Sequence record: MT708547.1
Length of the DNA stretch: 64,000 nt
Reading direction: 5' to 3' (one strand)
The notes beneath the pieces are model-generated. The model was not told the DNA's origin. It saw only the letters and a list, made by a program, of their open reading frames with translations, and searched no databases. Shown here in pieces: positions 2,102 through 63,180 of the stretch (its first letter is position 1; every line of letters starts with the position of its first letter). The position numbers and the translations under genes were made by a program.

Positions 2102-2593
2102 ATGACTAACGTTAATACCAATCTAGTAACTGATATCAAAAAAGTTATTACTTCTCATCATTTCTTTGCACCAGAAAAACAACGAGTCATCTCTGATATC
2201 AAAGAAGATGAACTTAGTATTATTATTCGTTTTAAAGAACCTGGTGATGAAATTTCATCACAGTTCACTGTACTTCGTGGTAAATTCCGCGAAGAAGGCG
2301 TTGACAAGATCCCAGCTTACATTCTTTTTATTACACTTGGTAGTGTAATTAAGCTGGAAATTGATGAAAATCTGGAGCGTTCATATAAATTTATGCTTGC
2401 ACCAGTTACAGATGATGATAACGTTGAACTGGATTTCAAGAATGATTTCACTGAAGAAGAATTCTTTCAGCAAAGTACAATCCATGATTTCCGTTCAGTA
2501 ACTTATGAACACGTCGAACTTATCAAAGATATGATTGAACCAGTTACCAGTTACGAGAAATATCTCGATGGTCAAGCTGAAGGCAACGAATAA
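2102..2593 (+). CDS. hypothetical protein, FQxS-motif paralog family
   Basis: C-terminal FTEEEFFQQSTIHDF. Confidence 0.8.
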   Translation: MTNVNTNLVTDIKKVITSHHFFAPEKQRVISDIKEDELSIIIRFKEPGDEISSQFTVLRGKFREEGVDKIPAYILFITLGSVIKLEIDENLERSYKFMLAPVTDDDNVELDFKNDFTEEEFFQQSTIHDFRSVTYEHVELIKDMIEPVTSYEKYLDGQAEGNE

Positions 2594-2598
2594 AAATA

Positions 2599-2624
2599 AA
2601 TAACCCACTTCGGTGGGTTATTTT
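2599..2624 (+). terminator. intrinsic terminator
   Basis: AATAACCCAC-TTCG-GTGGGTTATT followed by T residues, right after the stop codon. Confidence 0.85.
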
Positions 2625-2643
2625 CTATATAAGGATATAAATT

Positions 2644-3201
2644 ATGTTAAAAGAAATTCAAAAATTAACAAATTCAATTGTAGATTTTCTTAAAGATAAA
2701 AATGGTTTTAGTACTGAAGTATCAAAACAGGGTGTTCAGTTAATCGTTAAAAGTCCTAATGGTACTGAAACTTTGTATGATGTTTATGAATTGCTTTTAT
2801 ATAAACTTAGTGCTAATAAACTAGGTGGTGATATTCAGTTAAACATTAATGATAGTACTGAGGGTAAGATTTTTGCAATTAACACGAATGTAAATTTTGA
2901 TATACATTCTAAAATCCTCGAAATTAATAATTCATTTGATGATTTCAAACACGACACCATTCGTGGTGTTTTTGTTAGTACTCAATTATCTGAAAGTACA
3001 AATCCGTTTTCGGTACTAACTATGTATAAAAATGGTACATGGGTTCGTTACGATTTAACACTGTCGGAATTACTGTACGCTTGTGTAAATGGGTATAAAT
3101 TACAATTGAACGATTCAGGTTTTGTATACAATGAATTACGTGAATTGTGCGAAAATGTAAAAAAAGAAATGAAGCAAGAAGAAAATACAATATCCAAATA
3201 A
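2644..3201 (+). CDS. hypothetical protein
   Basis: 185-aa ORF with AAGGA ribosome-binding site. Confidence 0.7.
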   Translation: MLKEIQKLTNSIVDFLKDKNGFSTEVSKQGVQLIVKSPNGTETLYDVYELLLYKLSANKLGGDIQLNINDSTEGKIFAINTNVNFDIHSKILEINNSFDDFKHDTIRGVFVSTQLSESTNPFSVLTMYKNGTWVRYDLTLSELLYACVNGYKLQLNDSGFVYNELRELCENVKKEMKQEENTISK

Positions 3202-3217
3202 TGAGGTAGATCTCTGT

Positions 3218-3640
3218 ATGACATTACATGAAGTACTGAATAGTTTCTTTGAATTGAATATTTCAGAAATGAAAACCAAACAAAATAGACACCAACATAG
3301 TGTTTGGTATGATGCCCAACCACAACCGTTTTTAATCAATTTTAAAGAAACAGAAACATACACAATAATGAGATTTCATCATTTTGATGGTGAAAATAAT
3401 TACAGGGTATCATATGATGCAGGAACTGATCGACTGATTTACACAGTAATGGGTACCATTTCATCAACCATTACGATTGGAAACTTCTCTTCTTATAAAT
3501 CAGAAGATAATTTTTTTCAGGATTCACTGATTAATGATTACAATGATTTATCATTCGAAGATATTGACAAAATGATGAATATGTTCTATAATGTAAAAAA
3601 TACAAGTTTATCCCTATTTGGTGAAGATGATGAAATTTGA
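3218..3640 (+). CDS. hypothetical protein, FQxS family
   Basis: SEDNFFQDSLINDY. Confidence 0.75.
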   Translation: MTLHEVLNSFFELNISEMKTKQNRHQHSVWYDAQPQPFLINFKETETYTIMRFHHFDGENNYRVSYDAGTDRLIYTVMGTISSTITIGNFSSYKSEDNFFQDSLINDYNDLSFEDIDKMMNMFYNVKNTSLSLFGEDDEI

Positions 3641-4067
3641 TTTAGAAAAATTTCTGGATTTGGATTTAGATTCATTTTATATCAGAAAGTTTATTTTTAA
3701 ACCACACACAAATGTGGTTGATTATGCTGTGATTGAACTACATGAATCGGATTATACAATTTGGTACGATGTTGATGATTGTATTCAACTAAAGGAATGT
3801 GATGAATGTAAAGGTTATGTTCTGTTGTATGACCTCAATACAAATGAAATTACATTAAAAACTTCACATTATGATGAATACGGTATTATAACAAGACGTG
3901 AATGTGTTGCATTTTCACATGATGATTACACAGAAGAATCATTTTTTATGATTAGTACCTTACATGATGTTGGGGAATTTACATTTGAAACTTTCGATAA
4001 ATTTAATAAAATTTTGAAAAAGATTAAATCAATGATCAAGGAAATTGAAAATGAACAGTCCAAGTAA
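3630..4067 (+). CDS. hypothetical protein, FQxS family
   Basis: YTEESFFMISTLHDV. Confidence 0.75.
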   Translation: MKFDLEKFLDLDLDSFYIRKFIFKPHTNVVDYAVIELHESDYTIWYDVDDCIQLKECDECKGYVLLYDLNTNEITLKTSHYDEYGIITRRECVAFSHDDYTEESFFMISTLHDVGEFTFETFDKFNKILKKIKSMIKEIENEQSK

Positions 4068-4464
4068 ATGTTATATTGTTATTCGTAATGATTTGGATAT
4101 GCCAGAAGGTAAATTTGGTGCACAAATCGGTCATGGCATCGACGCAGTATGGAAAGAGGTTTTGGTAGCCGGTACAATGGTGCGTGCTGCAAATATAGCC
4201 AATGAACAACCAAAAGAGCGTGATATCAAAATACAGGATGAAATTTCTAAATGGGTGAGTGACGGTAGTAGAAAGATTATTCTAAAAACAAAATCAGAAG
4301 ACGAATTACTGAAAATTTATAAAAAGGTATTGTCTGAAGGTTGTATTTGTACTAAAATTTATGATTATGGATTTAATTTTTTTGATGGTTTAACTTTAAC
4401 TGGTATTGTTGTACATCCATGTTCAGAAGAAATTAAAACATTAAAACGAGTACGCTTATGGTAA
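4051..4464 (+). CDS. pth2: peptidyl-tRNA hydrolase, Pth2 type
   Basis: KCYIVIRNDLDMPEGKFGAQIGH (family pattern K.V.VVR.DL.M..GK.AAQ..H), W...GSRKIILK, and IYDYG (I.DAG). Confidence 0.85.
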   Translation: MNSPSKCYIVIRNDLDMPEGKFGAQIGHGIDAVWKEVLVAGTMVRAANIANEQPKERDIKIQDEISKWVSDGSRKIILKTKSEDELLKIYKKVLSEGCICTKIYDYGFNFFDGLTLTGIVVHPCSEEIKTLKRVRLW

Positions 4465-4832
4465 ATGAACATTTAAAAGAATTATGTTCTTTATGGAAAT
4501 CATCTGATGTAAGATTTGAACCTGTACCCAAAAATAAAGATAACTGGCATAATTCTATTGTTATGGGGTCTGGTGGTTTTTTTCTTTTACCTATGGTACT
4601 AAAAGATAAAAAAATAGGTATTGTTGTTTTATACAATGATCTTATATATTATTTTTTGTACGAAGATGAAATTCAGTACGTACATAATAATATGACACAT
4701 ACATACAAAAGAGATACCACACATGAAGAACTATTCCAACTAAGTACTTTATACGATGAAGTAATTCAGTACGAAAACTTAATAGAAGTTTTTAACTTAT
4801 ATGATTCCGTAATGGAGGTAATTGAAAGATGA
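4458..4832 (+). CDS. hypothetical protein, FQxS family
   Basis: TTHEELFQLSTLYDE. Confidence 0.75.
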   Translation: MVNEHLKELCSLWKSSDVRFEPVPKNKDNWHNSIVMGSGGFFLLPMVLKDKKIGIVVLYNDLIYYFLYEDEIQYVHNNMTHTYKRDTTHEELFQLSTLYDEVIQYENLIEVFNLYDSVMEVIER

Positions 4833-5170
4833 TGAGTCATTGTAAATTCTGGCTTCCTGTTATGGTTGTTCTGTTTATTATTTTTACAGTAGTAAACTAT
4901 AAAATCCACAATTCTATCCCAAGACAGCCTACAGCAGAAGAATTAGCTATTCATCAAAATAGTGGTTTATATGCTGAAGTACTCAATAAAATCAAAAACA
5001 AATGTACTGGTATCAGTGATAATGAAAAGAATACATTTTATACATGTGAAGATGGTTCTAAAGTATCAGTGATTTACTGGAAACGTCAAGAAAGAACTGG
5101 GTATGTCACTCGTGATTTTGATAAGGATGGTAAATTAATTTCAATTTATGGACACCCAGATGATATCTAA
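4829..5170 (+). CDS. hypothetical membrane-anchored protein
   Basis: N-terminal hydrophobic segment FWLPVMVVLFIIFTVV. Confidence 0.7.
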   Translation: MMSHCKFWLPVMVVLFIIFTVVNYKIHNSIPRQPTAEELAIHQNSGLYAEVLNKIKNKCTGISDNEKNTFYTCEDGSKVSVIYWKRQERTGYVTRDFDKDGKLISIYGHPDDI

Positions 5171-5612
5171 AGAACAACATAAATTTTTATTCAAAATATT
5201 GAATTCTTATAAAGTTAATAAGTTCAGTACTAAACACGTTCACAATCCAAAAATTATTATTATCACAAGGCGATATATAGGAAATAACAGATTTGAAATA
5301 CACTTATATAAAGGAACTATTTCATTAGAAATTCAAAGATATGGTATTATTTTATTATTAATTGAGTATAATCCAATTTCTGACAATATGACATTATTAT
5401 TCAATGATAATGAACATTGTTCTGAAATCGTTTATCGTATAAACGATGTGTCGGAAATTCTTGAAGAAGATGGTTATTTTCAACAAAGTCTTGTACAAAA
5501 TCTTCCATTGGAATATAATGATTTTTGTAAAATGATGGATGATATCACAACCATCAAAAATTCAATGCTGGAACGTTTTGAGTTAACAGAGCAAGTGTGC
5601 GACAATGACTAA
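5160..5612 (+). CDS. hypothetical protein, FQxS family
   Basis: EEDGYFQQSLVQNL. Confidence 0.7.
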   Translation: MISKEQHKFLFKILNSYKVNKFSTKHVHNPKIIIITRRYIGNNRFEIHLYKGTISLEIQRYGIILLLIEYNPISDNMTLLFNDNEHCSEIVYRINDVSEILEEDGYFQQSLVQNLPLEYNDFCKMMDDITTIKNSMLERFELTEQVCDND

Positions 5613-6475: not shown

Positions 6476-6511
6476 GATTTCTAAATAAAATAAAACATAA
6501 CAAGGATGTTT

Positions 6512-7399
6512 ATGAAACCTATTACAGTACTGTCATTATTCAATGGGATGAGTGTTGGGTATATGGCACTAAAGAATGCTGGAATTCCAGTACAGAAATA
6601 TTACTCATCAGAAATTGATAAATTTGCTATTGCTGAATCACAAGCCAACTACCCTGATATTATTCAGTTAGGTGATATAACTAAATGGGAAGATTGGGAT
6701 ATCGACTGGGGTAGTATTGACCTACTTATTGGTGGAAGTCCTTGTACTGATGTAAGTTTTGCGGGAAAACAAGAGGGGTTAGTGAAACCAGATGAAAACG
6801 GTGATGGTGGAACACGAAGTGGTTTATTTTATATAATGATTGACATATTCAATCATATTAAATCGATAAATCCAGATTTAAATTTTTTATTTGAAAATGT
6901 CAAGATGAAAAAAGAACATCTTGAAGAATTTAATAATAATATAGGGGTTGATCCTGTTCTAATCAATTCTGAATTATATACTGCTCATTACAGACAGAGA
7001 TATTACTGGATTAGCTCAAATAAGCTAATTCTCAATCCCACCTACGAAGCCCCCGTACTTCAAGATATTATTGTTAATGCATATACTGACAGGAATAAAT
7101 CATATTGCATTGATGCCAATTACTGGAAAAAGGGGAACATTAAACAGTACTTACACAAATCAAGAAGACAGATTGTTTATCTAAGAGACGATCATGATTT
7201 ATTCAGTACTGAAGAAAAAATTAACACATTTAAACTTAATGTTGATTATCGACATTTAACAGTAGATGAAGTATGTTTATTACAGGGTGTACCTGTTGGA
7301 TTTTTTAAAGTAAGTAGTACAACACAAGCATACAAAATGCTAGGTAATGGATGGACATGTCCAGTTATTGAACATCTATTAAAGGAAATTTTCTTTTAA
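6512..7399 (+). CDS. dcm: DNA (cytosine-5) methyltransferase, orphan
   Basis: Motif I LSLFNG, EID, motif IV GGSPC, motif VI FENV, motif VIII RQRYYW, motif X YKMLGNGW; AAGGA 5 nt before the ATG at 6512. Confidence 0.92.
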   Translation: MKPITVLSLFNGMSVGYMALKNAGIPVQKYYSSEIDKFAIAESQANYPDIIQLGDITKWEDWDIDWGSIDLLIGGSPCTDVSFAGKQEGLVKPDENGDGGTRSGLFYIMIDIFNHIKSINPDLNFLFENVKMKKEHLEEFNNNIGVDPVLINSELYTAHYRQRYYWISSNKLILNPTYEAPVLQDIIVNAYTDRNKSYCIDANYWKKGNIKQYLHKSRRQIVYLRDDHDLFSTEEKINTFKLNVDYRHLTVDEVCLLQGVPVGFFKVSSTTQAYKMLGNGWTCPVIEHLLKEIFF

Positions 7400-7428
7400 T
7401 TAATAATTTAAAATGGAAAATAATATCA

Positions 7429-7638: not shown

Positions 7639-7690
7639 ACAAAAAAATCCACCACATGTGGATTTTTTTCTATTTGAGATTAAATTAAAC

Positions 7691-8128
7691 ATGCATAATG
7701 AAGAAATAATTCATTTTCTTAAATTTTATTTAAAATGTATGAATGCTGTTCAAAAATTAATGGAATGTGAAATGATTAATGATTTCAATGATCATTTTGG
7801 ATATATAAGTACAGATTTATATCCCGTCCCTGTTCGTGCAAAATGGAATTATGATCAAGATGCATATGCAATGCAACTGGATTTTGATTTATTCGGACTT
7901 CCATCTAAATTTAATATAGGAACTATTTGTTTTGATAAAAATGATGGTTTGATTTTAATTTGTTATAACAATAAAACAGAAGTTGATTTAAAATACAGAG
8001 AATGGTTAACCGAAGAATCGTTTTTTCAGTCCTCGTTAATATATGATTTTGGTAGTACTGATTTACAGTACTGGAAAAAATGCATTGATTTATTTGAAAA
8101 GATTGAAGGAGTAATGACAGGTGTTTAA
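7691..8128 (+). CDS. hypothetical protein, FQxS family
   Basis: WLTEESFFQSSLIYDFGSTDLQYWKKCI, closest to 18752-19201. Confidence 0.8.
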   Translation: MHNEEIIHFLKFYLKCMNAVQKLMECEMINDFNDHFGYISTDLYPVPVRAKWNYDQDAYAMQLDFDLFGLPSKFNIGTICFDKNDGLILICYNNKTEVDLKYREWLTEESFFQSSLIYDFGSTDLQYWKKCIDLFEKIEGVMTGV

Positions 8129-8516
8129 AATAAAACTAATTTATACCACTGGTAATACATTCGAAACATGTGAAGTAGAAAGATTTATTAATTGCGAATG
8201 GGATACAGAAGAGAAAGCTATTCATGAAATGAATAAAATCCGAGAGCACTGGATTTTCAATAAAAAAATTAGTTCTACTCGTGATAAAGACACAAAGAAG
8301 AAATTGGTATCACAAGCTATTATGCAATCATGGTATAAACCTGGTAATTCTGAATATACTATGTTGCTAGTTGATAATGATGGAAATTCTTTTGAAATGT
8401 ATGCTGCATGGTTAGGGTATTTTGAAATTCTTCACAGTACTGAAGTAGTAAATGCAAACCAATTAGACAACTATATTGATTTCGATGAATTAAGATCAAA
8501 TATGGGATTGTGGTAA
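8121..8516 (+). CDS. hypothetical protein
   Basis: GTG start overlapping the previous stop; GGAG ribosome-binding site. Confidence 0.65.
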   Translation: MFKIKLIYTTGNTFETCEVERFINCEWDTEEKAIHEMNKIREHWIFNKKISSTRDKDTKKKLVSQAIMQSWYKPGNSEYTMLLVDNDGNSFEMYAAWLGYFEILHSTEVVNANQLDNYIDFDELRSNMGLW

Positions 8517-8950
8517 TGGATGGTCCAACTGTACTAAAAATCCTTCGTAAATTTAAACACCCAATGTTGTTCGGACGTTGGAAATCGTTAAAAGAAAATA
8601 AAAATACCGACGATCAAAAAAATATCAATTATAGATGGTATTGGGATTATTCAAAAGATTATGGTGATTCACTTTGTATAAAAATTAAATTCAATAATTA
8701 TAATAAATGGTCTAGAGATAAAAAATATATATATTCATATGATATTCACTTATCAAAGGAACATGTATTTATTTTTCATAGAAGTTACAACAAATTTTCA
8801 TTGAAACATGATGTACTATTTTCTATAAATGAATTATATGAAGATTTAGAAAGTGTATTATTTCAGCAATCATTATTGACTTCTACTGGTATGATGAGTA
8901 CCCAAGAAATTGAAGTACTTAAAGAATTAAAAGATATGTATTTTCCATAA
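8516..8950 (+). CDS. hypothetical protein, FQxS family
   Basis: LESVLFQQSLLTST. Confidence 0.7.
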   Translation: MDGPTVLKILRKFKHPMLFGRWKSLKENKNTDDQKNINYRWYWDYSKDYGDSLCIKIKFNNYNKWSRDKKYIYSYDIHLSKEHVFIFHRSYNKFSLKHDVLFSINELYEDLESVLFQQSLLTSTGMMSTQEIEVLKELKDMYFP

Positions 8951-8971: not shown

Positions 8972-13191
<4,220 letters not shown>

Positions 13192-14382: not shown

Positions 14383-15281
<899 letters not shown>

Positions 15282-18751: not shown

Positions 18752-19201
18752 ATGAATATCACTAATGTAAAAGATTTTTTAGAATATTTTATTAAGAATA
18801 CTCGTGCACGTGATGAATTAGAAAAGAATGGATTCATCCAAGGTTACGATTGCACTAATTTCTTTTATACTATTGATAAACATGAATATTATGTCGATGC
18901 AATTTTAATTGATGATGATGGGTATTGCGTTGGATTTTCGTTCGAAGATATATCACAAGATGCACCAATAAACTTTTATGCATTATATTATAATAAAAAA
19001 GATAATATTTTGAAATTAGGATTTACCAGTGACACGGATGAAGATGTTGTATTCAATTGTAACACATGGTTGGAACATGATTCATTCTTTCAAAGTACAT
19101 TAATTCATAACTTTATGACAACAGATTTAGAGTACTGGAAAACTTGTATAGAATTACTTAATGTAATTTATAATGAACAAGTCAAACAAAAATGGCAATA
19201 A
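18752..19201 (+). CDS. hypothetical protein, FQxS family (a 47-aa ORF at 18589-18732 precedes it)
   Basis: WLEHDSFFQSTLIHNFMTTDLEYWKTCI. Confidence 0.8.
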   Translation: MNITNVKDFLEYFIKNTRARDELEKNGFIQGYDCTNFFYTIDKHEYYVDAILIDDDGYCVGFSFEDISQDAPINFYALYYNKKDNILKLGFTSDTDEDVVFNCNTWLEHDSFFQSTLIHNFMTTDLEYWKTCIELLNVIYNEQVKQKWQ

Positions 19202-21703: not shown

Positions 21704-22120
21704 ATGAGTAAAGTTACTTTACTGAATATTTTACAAGAATGCTATGAAAAACTTGAAAATTCCAATCCAAGTGTCATATTCAACTCATCATTTGATAATT
21801 ATTCTACTTCAAATTATAAAGCAAAAATTTTAGTATATAATCACTTTGATTTATCATCATTAAGTGATTGTAGTAACATTTACTTACACATTTGTGACTA
21901 CAATGATGATAGTGGGTATACTATGACGATTGATATTTACAAAGGATATTTTTATTATAAAAATAAAAAATTTGACAATTTTGAAAATTTATTCCCATTG
22001 ACTGAAGATACGATGTTTCAGTACTCAACACTTTATGACACATCATCCTTGACAATCGATGAGTTAAATTTTATAATGTCTATTAGTTTGGATATTCCAA
22101 TTTATGAAGCATCATTATAA
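21704..22120 (+). CDS. hypothetical protein, FQxS family
   Basis: LTEDTMFQYSTLYDT. Confidence 0.8.
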   Translation: MSKVTLLNILQECYEKLENSNPSVIFNSSFDNYSTSNYKAKILVYNHFDLSSLSDCSNIYLHICDYNDDSGYTMTIDIYKGYFYYKNKKFDNFENLFPLTEDTMFQYSTLYDTSSLTIDELNFIMSISLDIPIYEASL

Positions 22121-22386: not shown

Positions 22387-22794
22387 ATGAAAAAATTTCT
22401 TTCAAAAGAACACGAAGAAAATATTCTTAATGCATTGAGTGTATTTCCAGAGAGTGTCATAAGTAATAATAAGAATTCTACATATTATTATGGTAAAGGT
22501 AATTGGTTTTATTTTAGCGACAGTTCATATATGTGTGTATTAAATCTATGTACTGAAGAATATTCTTATTGTTTAAGGATCGATCCTCGTTATAAATTAA
22601 TCCTACTATGCGAAAAGAATGATGAATTTTATGAAAGTGAGATAGATGATACCGATTCATATATTAGTAATTTTTATCTCGAAGAAGATGTTTATTTTAT
22701 GGATAGTACTGTGAATGAAATTACTATTCCTTTTAGTATAATGAAACGTTCGCATGAATTTCTAAAATACAGCAGAGAAAAATTTCATGACTGA
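22387..22794 (+). CDS. hypothetical protein, FQxS family
   Basis: LEEDVYFMDSTVNEI. Confidence 0.7.
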   Translation: MKKFLSKEHEENILNALSVFPESVISNNKNSTYYYGKGNWFYFSDSSYMCVLNLCTEEYSYCLRIDPRYKLILLCEKNDEFYESEIDDTDSYISNFYLEEDVYFMDSTVNEITIPFSIMKRSHEFLKYSREKFHD

Positions 22795-23158
22795 TATAAA
22801 TGAAGTTATAGAGCATTTTTATAATTGGGTAATAACGGATCCAATAAAAACTGGATTAATTGAAAAATATAACTGCTCTATGTATTCTTATTGTTCAAAT
22901 AAAGCTACGATGTATAGTAAGGATGTTGATAATTATTTACTAATCACTGACGATGTAGTTTATGATGTATTTGACAATGAAATTGTCATTGATGGTGGTG
23001 ATGTTGATATTGTAAAATTACATGATATAGATTTCTCATGTACTGAATCGGCGGCGTTCCAATTAAGCACATTATATGATTTCCGATGCAGTACTGAAAG
23101 TATTGTATTATTATTGAAAATAGTACATATTTTAAGAAAAAAGAGAATGGTATTATAA
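22787..23158 (+). CDS. hypothetical protein, FQxS family
   Basis: CTESAAFQLSTLYDFRCST. Confidence 0.8.
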   Translation: MTDINEVIEHFYNWVITDPIKTGLIEKYNCSMYSYCSNKATMYSKDVDNYLLITDDVVYDVFDNEIVIDGGDVDIVKLHDIDFSCTESAAFQLSTLYDFRCSTESIVLLLKIVHILRKKRMVL

Positions 23159-23574
23159 TGGTGGAATTTAATGTTCAAGATTTTTATGATTTTGTAATGA
23201 AAGCAGAAAAGAATAATCGTGAATATATTAAAACAGTTGGGGGTAATATATATCAACACTACTGTTATTCTTTAACGGAGGGAATGGATGCATTTACAAA
23301 TTCAACTATGGACAATGTATTATATAATTTATTAATGCATAATTGTCATTATGTATTTGATGTTTACAGTAATCAAATAATTTATAAAATTATATTTTTT
23401 GATAAAAAACAAATTGAAAATACAATTAATTTGGATTGTTATGATTCTGAATCAAAAGAAGGATTTGCTTTTCAGTTATCAGTTTCATATGATTTCCCAT
23501 TTAGTACTGAAGATTATATTTTAATGTTAAAGATTGTTGATAAATTAAGACTAAACGAAAGGAATTTCAAATGA
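23158..23574 (+). CDS. hypothetical protein, FQxS family
   Basis: SKEGFAFQLSVSYDFPFSTEDYILMLKIV; tandem paralog of 22787-23158. Confidence 0.8.
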   Translation: MVEFNVQDFYDFVMKAEKNNREYIKTVGGNIYQHYCYSLTEGMDAFTNSTMDNVLYNLLMHNCHYVFDVYSNQIIYKIIFFDKKQIENTINLDCYDSESKEGFAFQLSVSYDFPFSTEDYILMLKIVDKLRLNERNFK

Positions 23575-30444: not shown

Positions 30445-31341
30445 ATGAAAGAAGTTGATCTAAATGAACTAAGTGCTGAAATCATGGAAACATTATTTGA
30501 TGAATCTGATATTGAGCAATCAAAAAATATTAAGAGTACAAAAGATAATATCAGTCTCAAACATCCAACTGGTGTTACAAATGAAATGCTGTTAAATGAA
30601 ATACATAATGGTATTAATGTAAAACAAAATCGTGAATTACTTATCCGTTATAATTATCCACTAGCAGTCAGTATTGCTAAACGTTGTAAATGTTATATTC
30701 CAGAAGAAGATAAAATTTCTTATGCAGTAGAGGGTCTTTTGAATTCAATTCATAATTTTGATGTTACAAAAGGTGTATTATTCAGTACTTATGCCAGTGC
30801 TTCCATTTACATGACAGTGATGAACATGAGTAATGAACATAATAATTTAGTTTATATCCCCCGCCATGTAAGTGTACATAATGTTAATATTCGTAAATTT
30901 GCAAATGAATACGAAAAGAAACACGGCAAAAAATGCAAACCTGAACTTATTTCAAAAGAACTCGGAATTAATGTTGATACTGTTGAGTTGTGTTTGTCTT
31001 TCCAGGAAACCACATCTCTTGATACTCCAACTTCTGATGATAGTACTGCACTAATTGATACCATTGCCAGTGATTGTAACGTAGAACAAAATGACGTTGA
31101 TAGTATTGTTCTGGAATTGATGAATGAACTAGAACCAAAAGAAAAGGAAATCCTTTCCAGAATTTATGGTTTGAATGGATATGCACCAGAAACCTATGAT
31201 AGCTTGATTAGTACTGGATTTTATGATAAAAAGGGTAAACGTATTACTGTTCGCGGAACTTTACATTACAAATTCAGTACTGCACTTGAGAAACTAAAGC
31301 GTTTGGTTCGTCTAAAAGGATTAACTGCCAAAGATGTTTAA
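30445..31341 (+). CDS. RNA polymerase sigma factor, sigma70 family
   Basis: Region 2: RELLIRYNYPLAVSIAKR...EGLLNSIHNFDVTKGVLFSTYA; VYIPRH; region 3: SLDTP; region 4: LEPKEKEILSRIYGL. Confidence 0.85.
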   Translation: MKEVDLNELSAEIMETLFDESDIEQSKNIKSTKDNISLKHPTGVTNEMLLNEIHNGINVKQNRELLIRYNYPLAVSIAKRCKCYIPEEDKISYAVEGLLNSIHNFDVTKGVLFSTYASASIYMTVMNMSNEHNNLVYIPRHVSVHNVNIRKFANEYEKKHGKKCKPELISKELGINVDTVELCLSFQETTSLDTPTSDDSTALIDTIASDCNVEQNDVDSIVLELMNELEPKEKEILSRIYGLNGYAPETYDSLISTGFYDKKGKRITVRGTLHYKFSTALEKLKRLVRLKGLTAKDV

Positions 31342-40501: not shown

Positions 40502-41032
40502 ATGAAGCACTGGTCATATAAAAAAAGATTAAAGAAGAATAAATGGTATCCAAGATATGATTACATACCATGGATATCGAGTTTTGCAAGATTATCTGCT
40601 TTATCTAAAAAATGTACTATTAATAAATTTCAAGTAAGTGATATAAGCACTAAAGGTGTATATAAAGTAAAAGTTAACCCAAATGATGAAATTGGTATTT
40701 GTTTATTGAATTACAATGAATTTAGTATTAACTATATATCTTCTGCGGTGAAATATTTAAATATACTAAGTACTAATTATGAATTTTCAGATTTTTTTAC
40801 TGGAGGCCGCCGACGTATAATTTGTACTAAATCTTACGAAACTATTTCTAATGATGTAGATTTTTCAAATTTAACTGAAGAGGAATATTTTCAGTACAGT
40901 ACGTTATATGATAATCTTGATGATTTAGTCAAACTTAATACATTGTTTAAATGTATTGAAGAAAAAACCAAAGACAAATTTACATTAATGAATTTTCTAC
41001 GTGGAATTCAGAAATTTGAGGCTGAACAATGA
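40502..41032 (+). CDS. hypothetical protein, FQxS family
   Basis: FSNLTEEEYFQYSTLYDN. Confidence 0.8.
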   Translation: MKHWSYKKRLKKNKWYPRYDYIPWISSFARLSALSKKCTINKFQVSDISTKGVYKVKVNPNDEIGICLLNYNEFSINYISSAVKYLNILSTNYEFSDFFTGGRRRIICTKSYETISNDVDFSNLTEEEYFQYSTLYDNLDDLVKLNTLFKCIEEKTKDKFTLMNFLRGIQKFEAEQ

Positions 41033-45483: not shown

Positions 45484-48400
45484 TGTCTAACTGTCCACAT
45501 TGTAATAAAGAATTAAAAATTGACTACTGTGTATATATGAATGTAGAGACTTATGGTAAATCCGCATTAGCAACATCTAAATGTTGTGGGCGTGCTGTGG
45601 TGGTTTCTCGTGTAGTCAACTTTGGTATCAGTGCTTATAATGGTGAACGAACTGAAGATGATTGGGGTAACAGTATTCTACCAAAATCTAATGTACCACA
45701 AAGCAATATCAACGATGAACTCGCCATCAATGTTGTTGAACTTCTAAAATCAGATAGACTATATGAAGCATTGGAAATTATTCGTGGTATTAAAAATCCA
45801 CTGACTGCTGGTTGGTTAGTACAAGAAGTATTAAATGAATTAAATGTTCCAAGTCGTACACAAACAAAAAACTGGCTAATTAATGCTCTTTATAATGGTA
45901 AATGATTATGTTTGAATTATACAGATTCGCTGGAATTGCTATTGTTTTGTTGGGATTTATGTATATTTTAATTTGTGGGATGCTTTTATTCTTTAAGCAC
46001 AGTACATTATTAAATAAAATAACTCCAGAAATAGAAGATGAAGCATTTAAAGATACCTTTATTATCTTCTTTGTTGTTTTTGGAATTGGTGTATTAATAC
46101 TTGATATTGGTATACCAACCGCATGTGCTAGTGCATTATTTTCTTCTATTATACTATCCGCCGTAATTATGTGCAAAATAATTGATATACTAATTAAAAT
46201 TCGTAATAAATTACCACAGAGGTAAAATATTTTACAAAATAGAACTTTTAGGTTCTATTTTTTTATAAAAAGGACTATAATTTTATGCTTATTAAAGAAA
46301 CTGGCAGTAAAGTTAATTTTATTGATGTAAACGATGTATACGTAGGATATGATATTAGTCAGTCCTGTTGTGAACACGCTGGTTGGTTTATTCATCCAAT
46401 GCAATGTGAATCACCATATATTGAGGAATATGGTGATTCATACAGTGGTATTGTTAATAAAGAATTTGATTTAAATGGATTTGTATTTGATACTAAGTTT
46501 GTTGAATACTCAACCAAAGATACAGATTCTGGTGCAATGGTTATTTTCCGCATGGTTAAAGGTAATAATCAATTGTTTTTGCATCTATTCAATGTCCATA
46601 ACGGATACTATGGTCATGGTTTTGATACCAATCTTCCATGTGGGAATGGTTGTTTGTAAGAAATTAATATTAAGGTTGACTTCGGTCAACCTTTTTGCTA
46701 TTATGTAATTACAATTGTATACCGAGGATATTTAATATGTTCGCATTGCAAAATAAAAATACTAAACAGATAATGAAAGTATCTTATTATTTCACGAATA
46801 GTGATGCAGGGGTAGAATTTGATTCACAGGGTGATTATTTTTATTTAGAAAATGATCGTGAAGAACTGGAAAAACTACTTGAATTCTATCGTGAAGAAGG
46901 TAAAATAACACAGTTTGATGATTATCCAGAATGTGGGGTAGGAGAGTTGGATGGTTACGAAATAGTTGAAATTGAATTGGTAGTTAAATGAAAACACATT
47001 AGGAATTATATCATGAAAAACATCATCAAAAAAAGATTCAGGCGGTTATTCTGTAGTACTGAACGGTATTATTATCGGTGACGCAACAACTATGAAAGAA
47101 GCACGCAATATGATTGCTCAATACAAACGTAAACTTAAATACTCAAATTTAGTTCATAAGTATACTAAATTTTCCAACGATTTTAAGTCGAAATAAAAAT
47201 ATGAAAATTCAATTAAGTACTACACTACAAGACACAGAAAACAAAGATAATATTGAGGTACAAATTTTAGTTGATGTATCAAAACATGACACAGTACTGA
47301 TTAATATTGATGGTAAAACTTTTAAGTTAACAGATATTGAACGTATCATTGATTGTGCTGATAAATTAGTTAATTTAAGTACCGAATTCAAAGAAGAATA
47401 TAGTGAAGAAGTATCTGATTTAAAATATTTTGATATTGATTTCTTTAATCAACAGGGTGAACACAATAAAGTAACGCTTTTAGCAAAAGATCCTGCTCAA
47501 GCTGTGGTATCTTTCTATGGTTCTGCTCATGCGGAACTCCACCCAAACTCTACAATTGTCAGCGTAATGCTGAAAAAATATTGACAGTATGGTTTTCTTT
47601 TGATATTATGTATACATGTTGAGTGTACTGAGGATTTAATCATGCATGGTGTATTGACTTCACAAAGTATGAAAGTTGTATTCAAAGGTGAAGATGAAAT
47701 CAGTTTAGAATCTGAGATTGTTCAAGAATGTCGCAGCTTTTCTGAGTTTAAAGACTTAGATATTCATACACACGGTGATTATTTTCATCACTATACAATC
47801 CAGTACAGTACTAATAGTATTGAACCGAAAAACTTTGCACCACAAATTATGAAAGCAGCACTGCTATTGATTTCAATTGCAACAAAACGTGGATTAGTAC
47901 TAGTTAATTTATAATAGTGTTTGACAAATCTTAATGACTGCGGTACTATATCTATGTACCGCAAAACAACAAATTTTAATCTAAGGATATAAACATGAAC
48001 GTTACTTTCCATAAAACTGCTAACCACAAACATGAAATTCACATCAATGGTTTTAAAGCTGGTCTTATTCAACTTCTATCACATCATCCTGATCATAAAG
48101 TTAATGAGGAACAGCGTATGGATTGGCGTGTATTCTTTTGGGGAAAATATCAACAATTCCAAATGGATTATCGTGCAGTAGGTATCTGGCCTCAGACTCG
48201 CGGTTGTAATAGTGATATCTCTCTGAATCAAATGAAAAAAGATTTGGAATTTCTTTTGCAAAATAATATCGATATTGTTCTTCCTAAAAAGTATTTTGAA
48301 GATAAAGGATATGTATTCGCCCATTTCAATGACGGTGATATCTATACTATTGATACTGAATATCAAGATAAATGGACAGAATATTTCCATATCGGAGGAA

Positions 48401-49171
48401 AACATCATCTGTTTGTATCTGAACACGAACTGACTGAACGCGTACAAAAAATGTTTGATTATGAAAAACGTAATTACGCTGGTAAACCCCACTTATTGAG
48501 TGAAAATAAAATCCTGGATATTGAATATCGTATGGTAAATGCAATGTTCGATACTTCTTATTATAATAGCATTAAGGATTAACATGTTAGTTAAACTACA
48601 TTTTGATTTAGAAAAAATGAATGCTGAAGGTGCCAGAAATGGCACCTCGTATGAAGTAATCGATCACGATGGAAAGTATGCTCATATTGTGAAAGTAGAT
48701 TATTCTCATTCATTGTGGAATGGTTTTGGTGCAGAAGGTGTTCATGATATTGATTTCTTAATTGAACATCAACCTGGTGTATATGAAACTCTAAGTGCAA
48801 ACTTTCATTTAGAGATCGAAGAAACACAAATGAAAATTTGTGATAAGGATAACATTACCACAAACGGTGAAGTACTTGGATACGAAGAATATGAACCGTA
48901 TAGTACTGAATTCTTACCAAGTTATGGTGTATGTGATAACATCGAACAAGTATTAGAACTCTATAAACCTTGTATTGACCATAGTACTAATAAATTTGTT
49001 ATTTCATTGACACCAATATATAAAAATACACAACCAGAATTACATGGCTGGCGTTGGCATAAATGGGGTGAGTATATTGGTACTCAAGAAATTACAACCG
49101 AATACATTGCTGACGAACCACTAATTGAAATGGTATATTGCTTCCATATCTATTGTGTAGAAGAAAAATAA
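45483..49171 (+). CDS. ORFs 45483-45905 (CPHC zinc ribbon), 45902-46225 (membrane, C-terminal IRNKLP), 46285-46659, about 46737-46991, 47201-47584, about 47630-47914, 47995-48582, 48584-49171 (GWRWHKWG paralog 2)
   Basis: Tiling ORFs with ribosome-binding sites; paralogy as noted. Confidence 0.65.
46672..46704 (+). promoter_or_regulatory. terminator/promoter hairpin cassette 5
   Basis: AAGGTTGAC-TTCG-GTCAACCTTTTT; TTGACT-17-TATTAT. Confidence 0.8.
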
Positions 49172-56629: not shown

Positions 56630-57400
56630 ATGCATCCACGCCAACAACGCAGTCTTCAAATCCAGAAAAATTTTGAATCAATGATGGCCGTACTGGAAAG
56701 TATGCTAGTTCCTAATAGCTCGATAAACAGTATGGTGATTTCAGGCAGTCCTGGTATTGGTAAAACCTACTCCCTGTCTAAACGTCTGGATAAAGCTCAT
56801 GCTCAAGCTGAATGTAATGTAACTACGGTTAGTGGTAAAATGACTACCCTAGCACTTTTCGAAGTACTGTACAAAAACCGGTTCAGTACTAATATTATTG
56901 TACTTGATGATATGGACAGTATTTTTGATTCAGAAGATGGTATGAATCTGCTCAAAGCAGTACTTGATACGTCAAAACGTACAGTATCATATATGTCATC
57001 TTCTAAGTACTTAAAAGATAATGGTATCCCAAGTACTTTTGATTTTTTTGGTAAAATTGTATTCATTACAAATAAAGATTTAACTCGTATTGCTGCATCC
57101 AAAAGCAAACAAGCACCACATTGTCAAGCTTTGATTTCTCGTTCAGTGTATATTGATCTTGAAATTCAAAGCAAAGAAGATATCATGATTCATATCGAAA
57201 ATGTTATGCTCAGTACTAATATTCTTGAAAAATATAATGTTAATCAAAATGGTAGTAACATGATTCTTAATTGGATGCTGAAACACCAGGAACGTCTACA
57301 GTCTCCATCATTACGTACACCTGTACTTATTAGTGCTCTGTATAATTCCAATCCATATGATTGGGAAGAAATTTGCGAAAATGTTTATCTGGAGAAATAA
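56630..57400 (+). CDS. AAA+ ATPase
   Basis: Walker A GSPGIGKT, Walker B IIVLDD, LLKAVLD; AAGGAG before the ATG at 56630; promoter TTGACT-17-TAAGAT at 56574. Confidence 0.85.
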   Translation: MHPRQQRSLQIQKNFESMMAVLESMLVPNSSINSMVISGSPGIGKTYSLSKRLDKAHAQAECNVTTVSGKMTTLALFEVLYKNRFSTNIIVLDDMDSIFDSEDGMNLLKAVLDTSKRTVSYMSSSKYLKDNGIPSTFDFFGKIVFITNKDLTRIAASKSKQAPHCQALISRSVYIDLEIQSKEDIMIHIENVMLSTNILEKYNVNQNGSNMILNWMLKHQERLQSPSLRTPVLISALYNSNPYDWEEICENVYLEK

Positions 57401-57714
57401 TGAAATACAAATGTACGGTGTATAAAGAAGGAATTGTATTCATTGAAGTCTATGTAGATGATGATATTTGGTTTGAAGTTGATGAATGTTTTGATACAAA
57501 TGTATACGTATCAAAAAATGGATATATCTATGAATATAATTTAAATCACGATTTTGGTTCAATGCAAGATGATGAACTATTTCAAATGAGTACTGTAATT
57601 TCTATTCCTTTTGATTTAAAAATCATTAGAGAAGCCCATAAACAATTCAGTACTATTATAAAAGAAAATTCATCATTATTGTATCATTATATTTTAGTAA
57701 CAGAGGACGAATAA
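57400..57714 (+). CDS. hypothetical protein, FQxS family
   Basis: QDDELFQMSTVISI. Confidence 0.7.
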   Translation: MKYKCTVYKEGIVFIEVYVDDDIWFEVDECFDTNVYVSKNGYIYEYNLNHDFGSMQDDELFQMSTVISIPFDLKIIREAHKQFSTIIKENSSLLYHYILVTEDE

Positions 57715-57844
57715 TGAAACCAGAACAATGGATCATCGATGATATGCGTGCTATGCGTAAGATTGAAAATAAATCATACGAAGAACAAGCATACTTAGAT
57801 CTTCTTCAATGGTATGTAAAAGTAATTCAATCTAAGGAATAATT

Positions 57845-60607
57845 ATGTTAGACTTTATGCTAAAAAGTGAACTATCACATACTATTGGGTATAGTATTGC
57901 AGTACTAATCGTATTCAGCTTTCTGTTTGAAAAAATCAATTGGCTATTCAAAACCAATATCTATAAAAAGTATTATAAAGTTAAAAGTTTTGACAGACAA
58001 TTCTTTTTGGGTATAATGTATACATTAACATTATATTGTAGTGTATTTGAAATTGGATTTGTACTGGCTGATTTACCATTTACTTTGTACTTTTTATTGT
58101 ATACAGTCTTTGTTATACCATTTTCTTTGTATATTTTTTGTACTAAAGTGTTCGATAAAATTATTGAATTCCGAAATAAACTACCAGACTGATATGGAGT
58201 AATATAAATGATTGAGTTTATATTCAAAAGTGATTTCGCATATAGTGTTGGGTATTGTATCTTTATTGCTATTATTTTTAATTACTTATTTGAGAAAATT
58301 AATTATTTTTTTAAGACTAATATTCACAAAAAGTATTATACAAACAAGAGCAGTAAAAGAAAAAACATTGAATTCACTCTGTATATTAGTACTATATATC
58401 TGGTAACAATTGAACTTCCTTCAGTACTAACTGATAAAAATGTAACAATGCTATTTTGTGTATATAGTGTAGTGATTATCTTCTTTTGTGTATATTATAC
58501 AATCAAAGCATTGAATCAAAAATTAACTGAATTCCATAATAAACTACCGGATTAATTAAAAATGAATGAATTTCTACGAAGTGAACTATTGTGCTCAGTA
58601 CTACAATGCTTTTTGTTGTTATTCATTGTGTACCATTTGTATATTTTAGTACTATGGTACTTTAAACGTAAATCGTATTTGACATTATGGCAAAACAATA
58701 AGTTAGCAGTTCCATTTCTTACTACTACAACAATAGCTTATGCTCTTTCCGGGATTTTCCTGTTTCCAGTAGATGATCCTGTAATGCAAGAAAGTGGGAT
58801 AGCAATTGCTAATCTTATTAGATCACTGTTCATTAGTGCATGGTTTTTCTTTGTATTAATCAGGTACTTAGTGCGTTTACGTACTAAAATCGAAGGGGCA
58901 TTCTAAAATGCTGGAGTACATTAATCTGTTTGATACATCATTTGTTATAGTTAGTACTTATTATATTTGTAGTACTATTTTTTACTTTCTGATGTGGTTC
59001 TTTAAACGTAAACTGGATAACTTCATTAAGCAATATTCGTTACAACTGGCATTACAATTGTATTACTGGATTGGATTTGGTTTAATGTATTTGCATTACT
59101 ATTTTGTATTATATAATATCCGTGAAAATAATACATTTATGCTTTATATGCTACAAATTATCGGTACTACAATCTATGTAGGTTATCTAATGTCGATTGT
59201 ATTGTCAAAATTAAGAAACAAAATCCCTGATATGAGGAATTAAAAAATGACATATATTTTTATTGCATTAGCAATGTATTACTGGATTTCGTGGACTGGA
59301 TATCTCTTTGCATTGAAATCTTTTGATTATTTCAGTGCTTCCTGTAAAGAAAGTTGGGGGTGGCATGTATTAGCAACTTCGTCAGTAACATACTGTGCTT
59401 ATGAAAGTATTACAGATAAAACATTCAATGATATAGTATTAAGTACAGTACTGATGTATTTGTGGGTGTTTGCATTTATTGTTCATATTTCACCTTTAAT
59501 TAGAGATAAAATTGTAAAATTTCATAATAAACAAAAGGAAAAACGTGCATGATCCTTACATTAAATTTACTGACATTTTTTAGTGTATTAACGTGTTTAA
59601 TCTTTATTGGAAAATTCTTTTGTGTTAAAATAGCAGAGAAGATTTATGATTCATGGGAAAATGAAATGGCTTTATGGGTTCCTATATTCTGGACTGGCAG
59701 TAATGTATTTTTAATTCCAGCCTGGATTGGTGCAACAAAGGAAATCGTCCCACTTTTTTTATTCAGTGCAGTATTCAGTGCTGGTTTTTGTTTAATGTAT
59801 GGGGTATTTGCATTGATTGTTGCATTAGTACCTGCATTAAAGAATCTGCATGTAAAAATTAAACTCAAGAAATCACAGGGTAAATTATGACTTACAGAGA
59901 TTATTTTTGTATATTCGAATTACTGGTTTTTACTTCAGGTAGTTTAGTATTATTATTGTATTATTTTTGTGTTGAGCCTTTTTACAAATTATTAAAACCA
60001 AAAACTGAAATGGGTGTATTTTGTTTATTTCAGTTTATGTATTACTATTTTCTGTCTATTCTTTCTGTTGTTGTAGAAGTAATTTTCGGAGGATTTGTTA
60101 ATGCAGACAAAATGCCGTCATACGAGTTGTTTACAATCTTCAATGTACTTATGATTGCTTTAATTGTGTTCGTTTCAATTCTTGCTGGAATTTACAAATT
60201 TTTTGTATTCCTTGGTAACAAACACAATGATATAGTACTAAAACGAAAAGGAACACTGACAGATGAACGTAATTGAAATAATTGTAGTTGCATACCACAT
60301 TTTAGCAGTACTTCTTATTTTATCTGTTCTCGTGGATTATGCATTAGGATTTGATAAGCTTAAATTTGTATATCAGTACTTTGATGATAATTTCGATAGT
60401 GATAATCCGGTACATGTATTTCTTGGATTAGAATTCATGTGTTTAATTCTTGTACTGTTTATCCCTATTATCGGTACAGGAGCATCTCTTTTCTTTATTA
60501 CTGCAATTACATTATTGTACTTCGTAGTAATAGTTCTCATTTTAGTACTGTATTCTGTTGCGTATGGAATAGAAACAATTAGAAATAAACGCCTGTCAAA
60601 AAAATAA
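57845..60607 (+). CDS. tandem array of eight small multi-pass membrane proteins (57845-58192, 58208-58555, 58562-58906, 58908-59243, 59247-59552, 59549-59890, 59887-60276, 60263-60607)
   Basis: Each 101-129 aa with about three hydrophobic helices; the first two are clear paralogs (LFEKINxxFKTNIxKKYY...EFxNKLPD). Confidence 0.8.
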
Positions 60608-60664
60608 AAAATAATTCCTGAACTTGACAATGCGGGATTTTTTATAAAATAATAGAGGCACAAA

Positions 60665-61252: not shown

Positions 61253-61269
61253 ACAATAAAGGAAAATAA

Positions 61270-61902
61270 ATGAAATATTCAAGCCTGAATCTTTATAATA
61301 ATCCAGCAGTCGCTACTCATGCAATCACTGGTAGTATCAATGATTCTTCTTATAAAGAATTCCGTGAGTTCATCAAGGCAGTACTGGAAAATAATCAAAA
61401 AATCGCCGACGAAGAACGTATTCATAAAGAAAAGGAAGAATTTAATAAAATTCATAACCCAGAAGCTAAACCCGAATTCTTTAGCCCTAAAACTAAAGTA
61501 CAACGTATTAATCTTATCGTAGATTCATATGGCGGTCAATGTTCTTCTATGACCAGTATTGTTGCACTAATGAATAGTTCTCCTATTCCTATTGATACAT
61601 ATTGCTTCGGTGCTGCCATGTCAGCAGGATTTATGATTTTTATTCATGGAAAAAATCGTTATGTAGGTAATGCAGCAGACCTTATGATGCATAGTTTAAG
61701 TACTGGTGTATATGATCACGCACCTGGTATTAAATCAAAAGCTGAACATCTGCTGAAAATCAATACAGTCTATCAACAAATGGTAGCAAATAAAACTGGC
61801 CTTACAATGGAATGGCTTAAAGAGCACGAAGAAAAGGATATGCACTTCCTTGCAGATGATTGTATTGAATACAAAATTGCAGATGCAATCATTGAGGAAT
61901 AA
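61270..61902 (+). CDS. clpP: ClpP-like protease subunit
   Basis: INLIVDSYGG; CFGAAMSAG (catalytic Ser); LMMH (catalytic His). Confidence 0.85.
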   Translation: MKYSSLNLYNNPAVATHAITGSINDSSYKEFREFIKAVLENNQKIADEERIHKEKEEFNKIHNPEAKPEFFSPKTKVQRINLIVDSYGGQCSSMTSIVALMNSSPIPIDTYCFGAAMSAGFMIFIHGKNRYVGNAADLMMHSLSTGVYDHAPGIKSKAEHLLKINTVYQQMVANKTGLTMEWLKEHEEKDMHFLADDCIEYKIADAIIEE

Positions 61903-61905
61903 TAT

Positions 61906-62511
61906 ATGACAATATTATTCAGTACTAAAGATCCGGTAGGCGATTCTAGTAATGTAGTTAGTAACTTCTACAATCATGTTCGTCGTAAGACACATCATGG
62001 TTCATGGGGTGCTGATAAACATGCACGTAAGCTATTCCCGAGGGGAAAAGCGTATGATCGTCTGTTTGAATTACAATTGGATTGTTGGAAAAACCGCTAC
62101 GATTATTTCTAAGAGAATACTATGACTACACAACTAACCGATGATGGTCCGATTACTGTACAAGTACTGTTTTCTTTTGTACAAGCTACCAAAGATGAAC
62201 TACCAGCACTCTTTGTTTGCACTGCGGAGTACTTAGAAGCTAACGAAGAGACTGACAATGACATTACGCCAGATCAATTCCATGATATCTTTGAAGCTGG
62301 TGAACCAAAAGATGAAGATGATTGCATCTTCTACTACGTCAAAGGTTCTACACGCTTCCGCTTCTATGACATGGGCTATGGTACATGGGGAATTGAAGAA
62401 TTGAAAGATGGTGAGTATGATTGCGTAGGTGCGGTTGATGAGAAAGCATTGATGGCTCTACTCGGACAAGCTGGCCTCGTAAAAGATGATTCATTGATCC
62501 AGTACTTCTAA
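61906..62511 (+). CDS. hypothetical ORFs 61906-62112 and 62122-62511 (very acidic)
   Basis: Ribosome-binding sites; the second is D/E-rich and visibly higher in GC. Confidence 0.7.
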
Positions 62512-62514
62512 AAT

Positions 62515-62550
62515 AAAGGGTTGACTTCGGTCAGCCTTTTTTGTTATTAT
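62515..62550 (+). promoter_or_regulatory. terminator/promoter hairpin cassette 13
   Basis: AAAGGGTTGAC-TTCG-GTCAGCCTTTTTT; TTGACT-18-TATTAT. Confidence 0.8.
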
Positions 62551-62580
62551 AACAGTACTATATCAAAGAGGTAATTAATA

Positions 62581-63180
62581 ATGAAAAAAGTCAAAAAATT
62601 ATACAAAGATTGGTACAACAAAATTAAACAACAACATTTAACAAAAAAACGTAACCCACAATATACCTATGTGTTTAACTGGACTTTCAAATCTTCTGAT
62701 AGTATGAAAAAGATTAAACCAGGTGATACATTCAAAACTGCTAAAGTACTAAAAGTATTTCTCAGAGCCAATAATATCTATCTCAATGAAGTAGGATGGA
62801 ATAATAGAGGGAAAATTACCTGCACTAATAAAATTAAATCAGCTACCTTTGATGTATATATTAAAGATATTCCGTGCTCAATTATGATAACCTTTGCCGG
62901 AGTATCTATAATCACCAATTATCATAAACATAAAAAAAATAATACATTAGAAAATTGTATTGCATATCATGCACCTAATGATATCTTTATACACAATTAC
63001 CAAAAACATAAAGAATTAAACATCGATTACAATAACTTAACAGAAGAAGAAATATTTCAACTAAGTACAGTACTTGATATCGATTTCTATAAAACCATCA
63101 AAAATATAGGAACAGAACTGTACAACACACAAAACCTAAACTGCAATAAACTCGTAGCAGTACTAAACAAATACAAATAA
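62581..63180 (+). CDS. hypothetical protein, FQxS family
   Basis: YNNLTEEEIFQLSTVLDI. Confidence 0.8.
   Translation: MKKVKKLYKDWYNKIKQQHLTKKRNPQYTYVFNWTFKSSDSMKKIKPGDTFKTAKVLKVFLRANNIYLNEVGWNNRGKITCTNKIKSATFDVYIKDIPCSIMITFAGVSIITNYHKHKKNNTLENCIAYHAPNDIFIHNYQKHKELNIDYNNLTEEEIFQLSTVLDIDFYKTIKNIGTELYNTQNLNCNKLVAVLNKYK

Follow-up and report, generated by a model that had tools for sequence, protein, structure and literature searches.

Klebsiella phage Muenster (MT708547.1; 346,937 bp) is a RaK2/K64-1-like jumbo myovirus of the genus Alcyoneusvirus, and its last 64,000 bases, the right-hand end of the record (100% identity), are the stretch analysed here and called the window; window positions are obtained by subtracting 282,937 from record positions. 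Seventeen open reading frames (ORFs) of the window, named below by their first window position, carry in their C-terminal part the motif T-E-E-x-[FY]-F-Q-x-S-[TL]-h-x-D. It is proposed that they belong to a family that arose when one protein of about 140 amino acids (aa), consisting of a single domain, expanded specifically in the lineage of the RaK2/121Q/GAP32/CBB enterobacterial jumbo phages, with a p32-like fold common to all members and a putative role as binders of host proteins; to this statement as a whole, fold and function included, a probability of about 0.55 is given. Judged from the structure models, the family is a single fold that has diverged further than sequence comparison can follow, and does not consist of one motif joined to a range of domains.

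One fold beneath divergent sequences

Two members from different subfamilies, ORF 3218 and ORF 7691, were folded with AlphaFold. The model of ORF 3218, based on an 84-sequence alignment, is the best of the family, with a mean predicted local distance difference test score (pLDDT) of 95.7 and a predicted template modelling score (pTM) of 0.87. It begins with a helix at residues 3-11, continues with seven strands (19-23, 28-32, 38-44, 49-56, 61-67, 72-78 and 83-88) and ends with the helix of the motif (96-103) and a long helix at 113-133. The elements of ORF 7691 follow in the same order (mean pLDDT 73.9), with the last helix at 125-143, and the helix that the initial annotation had placed after the motif is therefore present in both models. 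Conserved columns of the family alignment fall in equivalent elements of the two models, among them an aromatic pair in an early strand, a Y-D that ends the third-from-last strand and hydrophobic residues in the last strands.

The model of ORF 3218 was also superposed on BFVD models of family members, and the superposition extends over the full length at template modelling (TM) scores of 0.67-0.83, a root-mean-square deviation (rmsd) of 2.4-3.3 Å and a sequence identity of 14-23%. These matches include RaK2 paralogues and homologues from GAP32, a Yersinia phage and other sources, with TM up to 0.83. For RaK2 H6X3Z4, the putative orthologue of ORF 3630, the TM score is 0.69, and for RaK2 H6X421, the putative orthologue of ORF 14790, it is 0.75 with an rmsd of 2.5 Å, both orthologues being assigned by protein length and accession order. 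The common layout consists of an N-terminal helix (αA), an antiparallel β-meander of six or seven strands, a short helix (αB), a turn and, at the C-terminus, a long amphipathic helix (αC), with conserved aromatic residues, mostly Tyr, on the strands. That the family has one fold, of which the motif is an integral part, is considered highly probable. The modular architecture suggested in the initial annotation, in which a constant docking motif is joined to unrelated variable domains, is contradicted by the full-length superposition of the paralogues and by the fixed place of the motif within the domain; this constancy of position, seen in every case, argues against a portable docking peptide. 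The shared full-length fold is found, but not a known function that would go with it. A feature search of the ESM Atlas gave no usable match, and the structural neighbours of ORF 3218 in the Atlas were discarded as meaningless because the Atlas's own model is poor (pLDDT 0.43).

At the level of sequence, the N-terminal parts are as unrelated as they had first appeared when examined with hidden Markov models (HMMs), clustering and profile-profile comparison. Leave-one-out N-terminal HMMs trained on 17 or 84 sequences did not recover the held-out members significantly, 127 N-terminal parts fell into 95 single-linkage components, and hhalign comparisons among the five largest N-terminal subfamilies were non-significant, with a best probability of 24%. 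Because these comparisons are non-significant, N-terminal homology rests on structure and not on sequence. Column identity beyond the motif averages about 10%. The N-terminal columns are more conserved than in controls in which the N-terminal residues were shuffled, and conserved aromatics are found in them, namely Y in 63 of 79 and Y or F in 72 of 83 sequences. Two pairs of window members are recognizable as full-length paralogues with phmmer (7691/18752 at 5e-16 and 22787/23158 at 1e-8), and the N-terminal part of ORF 57400 clusters with that of ORF 3630. The N-terminal subfamilies contain orthologues on distinct phage contigs, which indicates that the paralogues are individually maintained; the subfamily of ORF 2102, for instance, has relatives on other phage contigs, and tblastn matches to ORF 2102 itself in 121Q-like phages cover 94% of its length at about 46% identity. 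The view of the initial annotation that this is one paralogous family with a constant C-terminal element and an extremely divergent remainder is borne out.

Resemblance to p32

In an exhaustive structural alignment of the ORF 3218 model, gC1qR/p32 ranked first, with Z 6.9, an rmsd of 4.9 Å and 106 residues aligned, followed at Z 5.0-5.7 by Mam33, Trypanosoma p22, the Leishmania p32 homologue and p32-like subunits of mitoribosomes (5.3-5.7 for Mam33 and p22). When the Foldseek top 1000 were re-aligned, four p32 entries led at Z 6.6-6.9 over 106-108 residues. Taken together, the p32-family matches have an rmsd of 4.3-4.9 Å over 106-109 of the 140 residues, and the weaker model of ORF 7691 also matches Mam33 (Z 4.2). 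Foldseek against the Protein Data Bank gave nothing at an E-value of 1e-3 or better, p32 being found at 0.2-0.5, and a search of the Muenster and 121Q genomes with PF02330 was empty, as was its control search.

It has been reported that in p32 a helix at the N-terminus is followed by seven consecutive antiparallel strands and then by two further helices, a short and a long one, with all three helices on one side of the sheet and mostly hydrophobic contacts between them and the sheet (PMC5828189). This topology of αA, seven strands, αB and αC is matched by the model of ORF 3218, and proteins of the p32 family are small and strongly acidic, like the phage proteins. The phage proteins are, however, 30-60 residues shorter, and whereas p32 is a eukaryotic, single-copy protein of the mitochondrial matrix, the phage family has 10-45 copies. 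MAM33 proteins are not known to carry the TEExFFQxS motif. The fold is p32-like in architecture, and the family is not filed under MAM33, because the scores lie below the level of kinship and a sequence link is absent.

p32 assembles as an acidic trimeric ring in which αA pairs with αB of the adjacent monomer (PMC5828189), and the phage proteins, having the same topology, might likewise use αA and αB as the subunit contact of a trimeric ring, in which case rings of mixed paralogues would be possible. The p32 family is the top structural match, hydrophobic positions in the N-terminal helix are moderately conserved, and the genes of many members abut or overlap, all of which would suit such an assembly. 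Z is only 6.9, however, the alignment covers model residues 14-139 and so leaves out αA, and the length of αA differs between the two models (9 versus 22 residues). Assembly of this kind is regarded as improbable. Still less credence is given to the further suggestion that some 40 paralogues form mixed p32-like rings through αA and αB, whose combinatorial, acidic and multivalent surfaces would sequester host proteins; the targets may be defence nucleases, nucleoid proteins and other basic proteins, and combinatorial ring assembly, if true, would be undescribed for phages.

The C-terminal motif

The 17 ORFs named in the initial annotation are all open, lie on the plus strand and contain the motif, and that list is complete for the window, since the family profile finds exactly those 17 at E ≤ 1e-3. 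The consensus given there is literally fitted by 8 of the 17, against none in shuffles; the other nine require relaxing, and all 17 fit at one or two relaxed positions. A loose regular expression of the motif matches 14 of 166 plus-strand ORFs and none of 82 minus-strand ORFs, compared with 0.07 matches on average in 500 residue shuffles, and within the window the motif was not found in any reading frame beyond the plus-strand coding frames. The distance from the C-terminus, earlier put at 25-40 aa, needs only a small widening, as it is 29-58 residues for the invariant F, with a median of about 39. Among the homologous proteins fetched, 88 of 89 have the motif at the same relative position, as h-T-E-E-x-[FY]-F-Q-x-S-[TL]-h-x-D, and the motif-bearing homologues are 80-225 aa long, none of them with the motif fused to another type of domain.

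Conservation in the motif is highest for F (4.7 bits), followed by Q (4.25), S (3.7), E (3.4), D (3.3), E (2.9) and [TL] (2.7). In both AlphaFold models, the T/S stands directly before αB, E-E-x-[FY]-F-Q-x-S makes up αB, and [TL]-h-x-D-h makes up the turn, after which a second cap, [TS]-x-E, starts the long amphipathic αC. The variable positions of αB are i, i+4 and i+8 (x95, x99 and x103). On the models, this is read as αB packing its hydrophobic face on the sheet against the conserved tyrosines, with one narrow stripe left free to vary.

The same pattern could also arise if the polar face of αB and the turn (E-E, Q, S and D) were exposed and bound a single shared partner, perhaps RNA polymerase, an unfoldase, or a protease of the host or the phage, while the variable sheet of the same domain recruited different targets. 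Six polar residues reach 2.2-4.3 bits against the low column identity elsewhere, the single variable stripe leaves most of the circumference of αB constrained, and a ClpP-like protease and a sigma factor are encoded in the window. T-E-E and S/T-x-x-E/D are, on the other hand, ordinary helix-capping patterns, and unlike portable docking motifs, this motif is never seen beyond this domain or at another position. The topologically identical p32, with its helices on one side of the sheet and mostly hydrophobic contacts (PMC5828189), also speaks against an exposed docking face. Docking to a hub from within the single domain is accordingly judged unlikely, if less so than the p32-like rings.

A proteolytic site would be another reading of the motif, because E-x-x-[YF]-F-Q followed by x-S resembles the consensus of the potyviral NIa protease, as in tobacco etch virus (TEV), and of the picornaviral 3C protease, and cleavage after Gln by a protease of phage or host would free the C-terminal helix. 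The only sequence matches of the family profile in the Protein Data Bank are TEV-site tags (DYDIPTTENLYFQGS), but their E-value of 1.6 is non-significant. The position that follows Q varies and the conserved Ser stands at P2' instead of P1', a genome search for Peptidase_C3 (with an uninformative control) gave no match, and the segment is modelled as a well-packed helix with pLDDT > 90, which would make it a poor protease substrate. Cleavage at the motif is thus given hardly any chance, the least of all the alternatives considered here. The family consensus d-l-T-E-E-x-Y-F-Q-x-S (for example at window 40877-40906) is close to the TEV tag, probably by coincidence.

Members in the window

The 17 members are as follows.

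2102-2593, + strand: member of 163 aa, motif FTEEEFFQQSTIHDF; phrog_23322 at 1e-77
3218-3640, + strand: member of 140 aa, motif KSEDNFFQDSLINDY; folded with AlphaFold
3630-4067, + strand: member of 145 aa, motif YTEESFFMISTLHDV; phrog_24510 at 2e-69; overlaps the end of the preceding member
4458-4832, + strand: member of 124 aa, motif TTHEELFQLSTLYDE
5160-5612, + strand: member of 150 aa (154 aa if the ATG at 5148 is used), motif LEEDGYFQQSLVQNL
7691-8128, + strand: member of 145 aa, motif LTEESFFQSSLIYDF; full-length paralogue of ORF 18752 over residues 6-138
8516-8950, + strand: member of 144 aa, degenerate motif DLESVLFQQSLLTST; basic, isoelectric point (pI) 9.0
14383-14793, + strand: member of 136 aa, motif RSDDEYFQLLTSEDV; start codon uncertain
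14790-15281, + strand: member of 163 aa, motif TDEDEIFMQSTVQDK; phrog_22160 at 7e-78; start probably at the ATG four codons in
18752-19201, + strand: member of 149 aa, motif LEHDSFFQSTLIHNF; phrog_21500 at 5e-66; within the transfer RNA (tRNA) island
21704-22120, + strand: member of 138 aa, motif LTEDTMFQYSTLYDT; phrog_17453 at 1e-47
22387-22794, + strand: member of 135 aa, motif LEEDVYFMDSTVNEI; first of an abutting trio
22787-23158, + strand: member of 123 aa, motif CTESAAFQLSTLYDF; phrog_27994; resembles ORF 23158 over most of its length
23158-23574, + strand: member of 138 aa, motif SKEGFAFQLSVSYDF
40502-41032, + strand: member of 176 aa, motif LTEEEYFQYSTLYDN; basic N-terminal extension, pI 9.0
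57400-57714, + strand: shortest member, 104 aa, motif MQDDELFQMSTVISI; directly after a P-loop nucleoside triphosphatase gene
62581-63180, + strand: member of 199 aa, motif LTEEEIFQLSTVLDI; basic N-terminal extension, pI 9.6; two genes downstream of the ClpP-like gene

The start codons of ORFs 3630, 5160, 14383 and 14790 are uncertain, each having another candidate start no more than about 12 codons away, and the member genes that abut or overlap include 3218/3630 and 22387/22787/23158. The extensions of the members at 40502-41032 and 62581-63180 are 50-60 aa long and rich in lysine and arginine, unlike the acidic majority of the family.

Copy number and distribution in jumbo phages

A profile search of the whole Muenster record finds 34 family places at E ≤ 1e-3. 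In an ORF-level search, record positions 18-52 kb yielded 24 members at E ≤ 1e-2, and all 24 contain EExFFQxS[TL] on inspection. With the 17-24 further copies that lie outside the window, Muenster has about 40 copies in total (about 34-41) among 567 genes, or some 7% of its genes. At E ≤ 1e-3, profile searches also find copies in coliphage 121Q (45), Salmonella phage Munch (23) and Erwinia phage Kaldavass (10), 12 and 10 copies in the records taken as Cronobacter phage GAP32 (358,663 bp) and Pectobacterium phage CBB (378,379 bp), respectively, and 8 and 12 in two metagenomic jumbo phages. T4 gave zero family members at an E-value of 1 or better.

When the 17-member profile was compared with 1.84 billion representative proteins, 85 clusters (50% identity) were matched, all of 81-219 aa and with matches covering most of the family profile. 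Where the source of a member is known, it is a jumbo-phage genome or a long metagenomic contig, mostly of about 350 kb, with several paralogues per contig. In IMG/VR, a strict back-translated pattern of the motif occurs in only 11 stretches, 10 of which lie in contigs of 345-378 kb. A tblastn search of the phage collection with a distant family representative gave no match, and a word-index protein search returned close relatives only. One jumbo-phage contig of IMG/VR (372,173 bp) has one strict DNA match to the motif and zero members at E ≤ 1e-3; either the match is due to chance or the contig is a relative that lacks the family.

Genomic setting and expression

The window has a G+C content of about 31%, and its plus strand carries nearly all genes. 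A 20-kb terminal repeat is predicted at the left end of the Muenster record, which implies that the window adjoins a genome terminus. Near-consensus sigma-70 promoters, defined as TTGACA, a spacer of 16-18 nt and TATAAT with at least 11 of 12 matches, occur 31 times on the coding strand (ten of them perfect), twice on the opposite strand and 3.65 times in shuffles, and several stand directly upstream of family members. Such a density of sigma-70 promoters suggests transcription by the host polymerase and hence early in infection. The entire 64 kb resembles early DNA read by host polymerase, and a phage sigma factor gene lies mid-window at 30445-31341, the ClpP-like protease gene being at 61270-61902. 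As for charge, a pI below 5.5 is found in 80% of 127 members compared with 45% of the other ORFs of the window.

The members occur in tandem, often overlapping runs beside genes for PTH2, DNA methyltransferase and ADP-ribosyl-glycohydrolase or -transferase. Two distant relatives were examined: both, like Muenster, have a gene for a PTH2-type peptidyl-tRNA hydrolase interleaved with members, one shares a DNA methyltransferase gene with Muenster, and an ADP-ribosylglycohydrolase gene is found in the two relatives. These recurring neighbours (in the window, at 4045-4464 and 6506-7399) point to a conserved early-gene neighbourhood. Elsewhere in the Muenster record, at 38.2-50.5 kb, longer members of 165-225 aa with N-terminal extensions stand in tandem around a putative ADP-ribosyltransferase gene (48161-48571). 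A further tandem array, at window 57845-60607, consists of eight genes of about 115 aa, CPT_Muenster_554-561, which are annotated as putative membrane proteins; seven have three transmembrane segments and one has two, and the array looks like a second multigene family.

The setting also bears on the possibility that the family members are internal proteins, packaged and injected with the DNA in the manner of the T4 internal proteins or the inner-body paralogues of phiKZ, with the motif as a capsid-targeting or processing signal. It has been reported that 121Q shows an inner-body-like "bubblegram" (PMC7247149) and that the head proteins of phiKZ form a paralogous family (bioRxiv 10.1101/2025.11.23.690004). 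On the other side, the region examined in RaK2 contains 14 orthologues (ORF184, 186, 187, 189, 191, 196, 198, 213, 214, 218, 223 and 226-228), all of them annotated as hypothetical and none as a virion protein, while the neighbouring ORF182 is annotated as a virion structural protein; absence from the virion is judged here from annotation and not from raw proteomics. The genes moreover stand behind sigma-70-type promoters and not among the head genes. Packaging of these proteins is considered very improbable, and only proteolysis at the motif is rated lower.

Proposed function

From the helical periodicity of conservation and by analogy with p32, it is proposed that the invariant Phe and its hydrophobic neighbours would pack αB onto the sheet, and that the conserved polar residues would cap helices and bond sheet tyrosines, or would form a small surface patch or subunit contact. 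With the sheet face and the loops diverged, each paralogue would show a different, usually acidic, surface. The genes would be read early by the host RNA polymerase and the products would stay in the cell, as the promoter content and the lack of virion annotation in RaK2 suggest. There, the paralogues would be stoichiometric binders or inhibitors of different host proteins; the targets may be defence or housekeeping proteins and, because p32-like acidic proteins bind such partners, possibly basic nucleic-acid-binding ones. On this view, one scaffold would supply the phage with an arsenal for host takeover or counter-defence. The initial annotation had already spoken of an adaptor or anti-defence arsenal, and the early-looking, host-directed region makes an arsenal of binders a reasonable guess, although the modular build imagined for it fails. 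The functional part of this explanation, putative host-directed binding, is tentative and falls somewhat short of an even chance, while the explanation as a whole, fold plus function, is placed slightly above it.

Several points weigh against this explanation. The p32 match at Z 6.9 is below 8, the level that separates a shared arrangement from kinship, and none of 84 members matches MAM33 (Pfam PF02330). Only two members were folded, and the model of ORF 7691 is weak, with pLDDT 53-57 over residues 31-70. Of the 13 positions of the motif, six are polar and strongly conserved, which exceeds the usual needs of helix capping, and this excess would fit a functional surface, as in the earlier idea of a common hub, or a ligand site. 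An "acidic mimic" cannot cover all members, since four of the 17 in the window are basic, two of these having the basic N-terminal extension. Early expression is inferred from promoter consensus only, and the binding of host proteins is putative, being put forward as a proposal.

Databases and comparable families

No Pfam model matches the family members. PHROGs does not treat them as one family and splits them over at least 13 groups of unknown function; members match their own PHROGs end to end at 1e-47 to 1e-78, and cross-matches are limited to the C-terminal 40 residues. The genome paper of RaK2 states that about 10% of its products are paralogues and has nothing further on the family, a survey of 224 jumbo-phage genomes names other expansions but none such for RaK2-like phages, and the family is unmentioned in the recent reviews and genome papers searched. 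It therefore appears to be undescribed.

Among known systems, the zinc-ribbon expansion of phage G (about 35 copies) and the head paralogues of phiKZ likewise comprise tens of divergent small-domain copies in tandem runs, but these families differ from the present one in fold, motif and phage clade. Adaptor families of the F-box/BC-box type likewise have a short constant element in very divergent proteins; there, the domains to which the motif is fused are unrelated to one another, whereas here it lies at a fixed position within one conserved fold. To the multigene families already known from giant phages, the present one adds a large and sharply delimited case.

Significance

Jumbo phages of the RaK2, K64-1 and 121Q type are under development against Klebsiella and E. 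coli, and more than 80% of their genes are unannotated. The present result merges 34-45 genes per genome (about 7%), drawn from at least 13 groups of unknown function, into one family, and a confident fold model together with a diagnostic motif provides annotators with a single profile. It also leaves a tractable question for experiment, namely one scaffold with many surfaces and the binding partner of each. If the members are indeed binders for host takeover or counter-defence, many new inhibitors of enterobacterial proteins could be drawn from the family.

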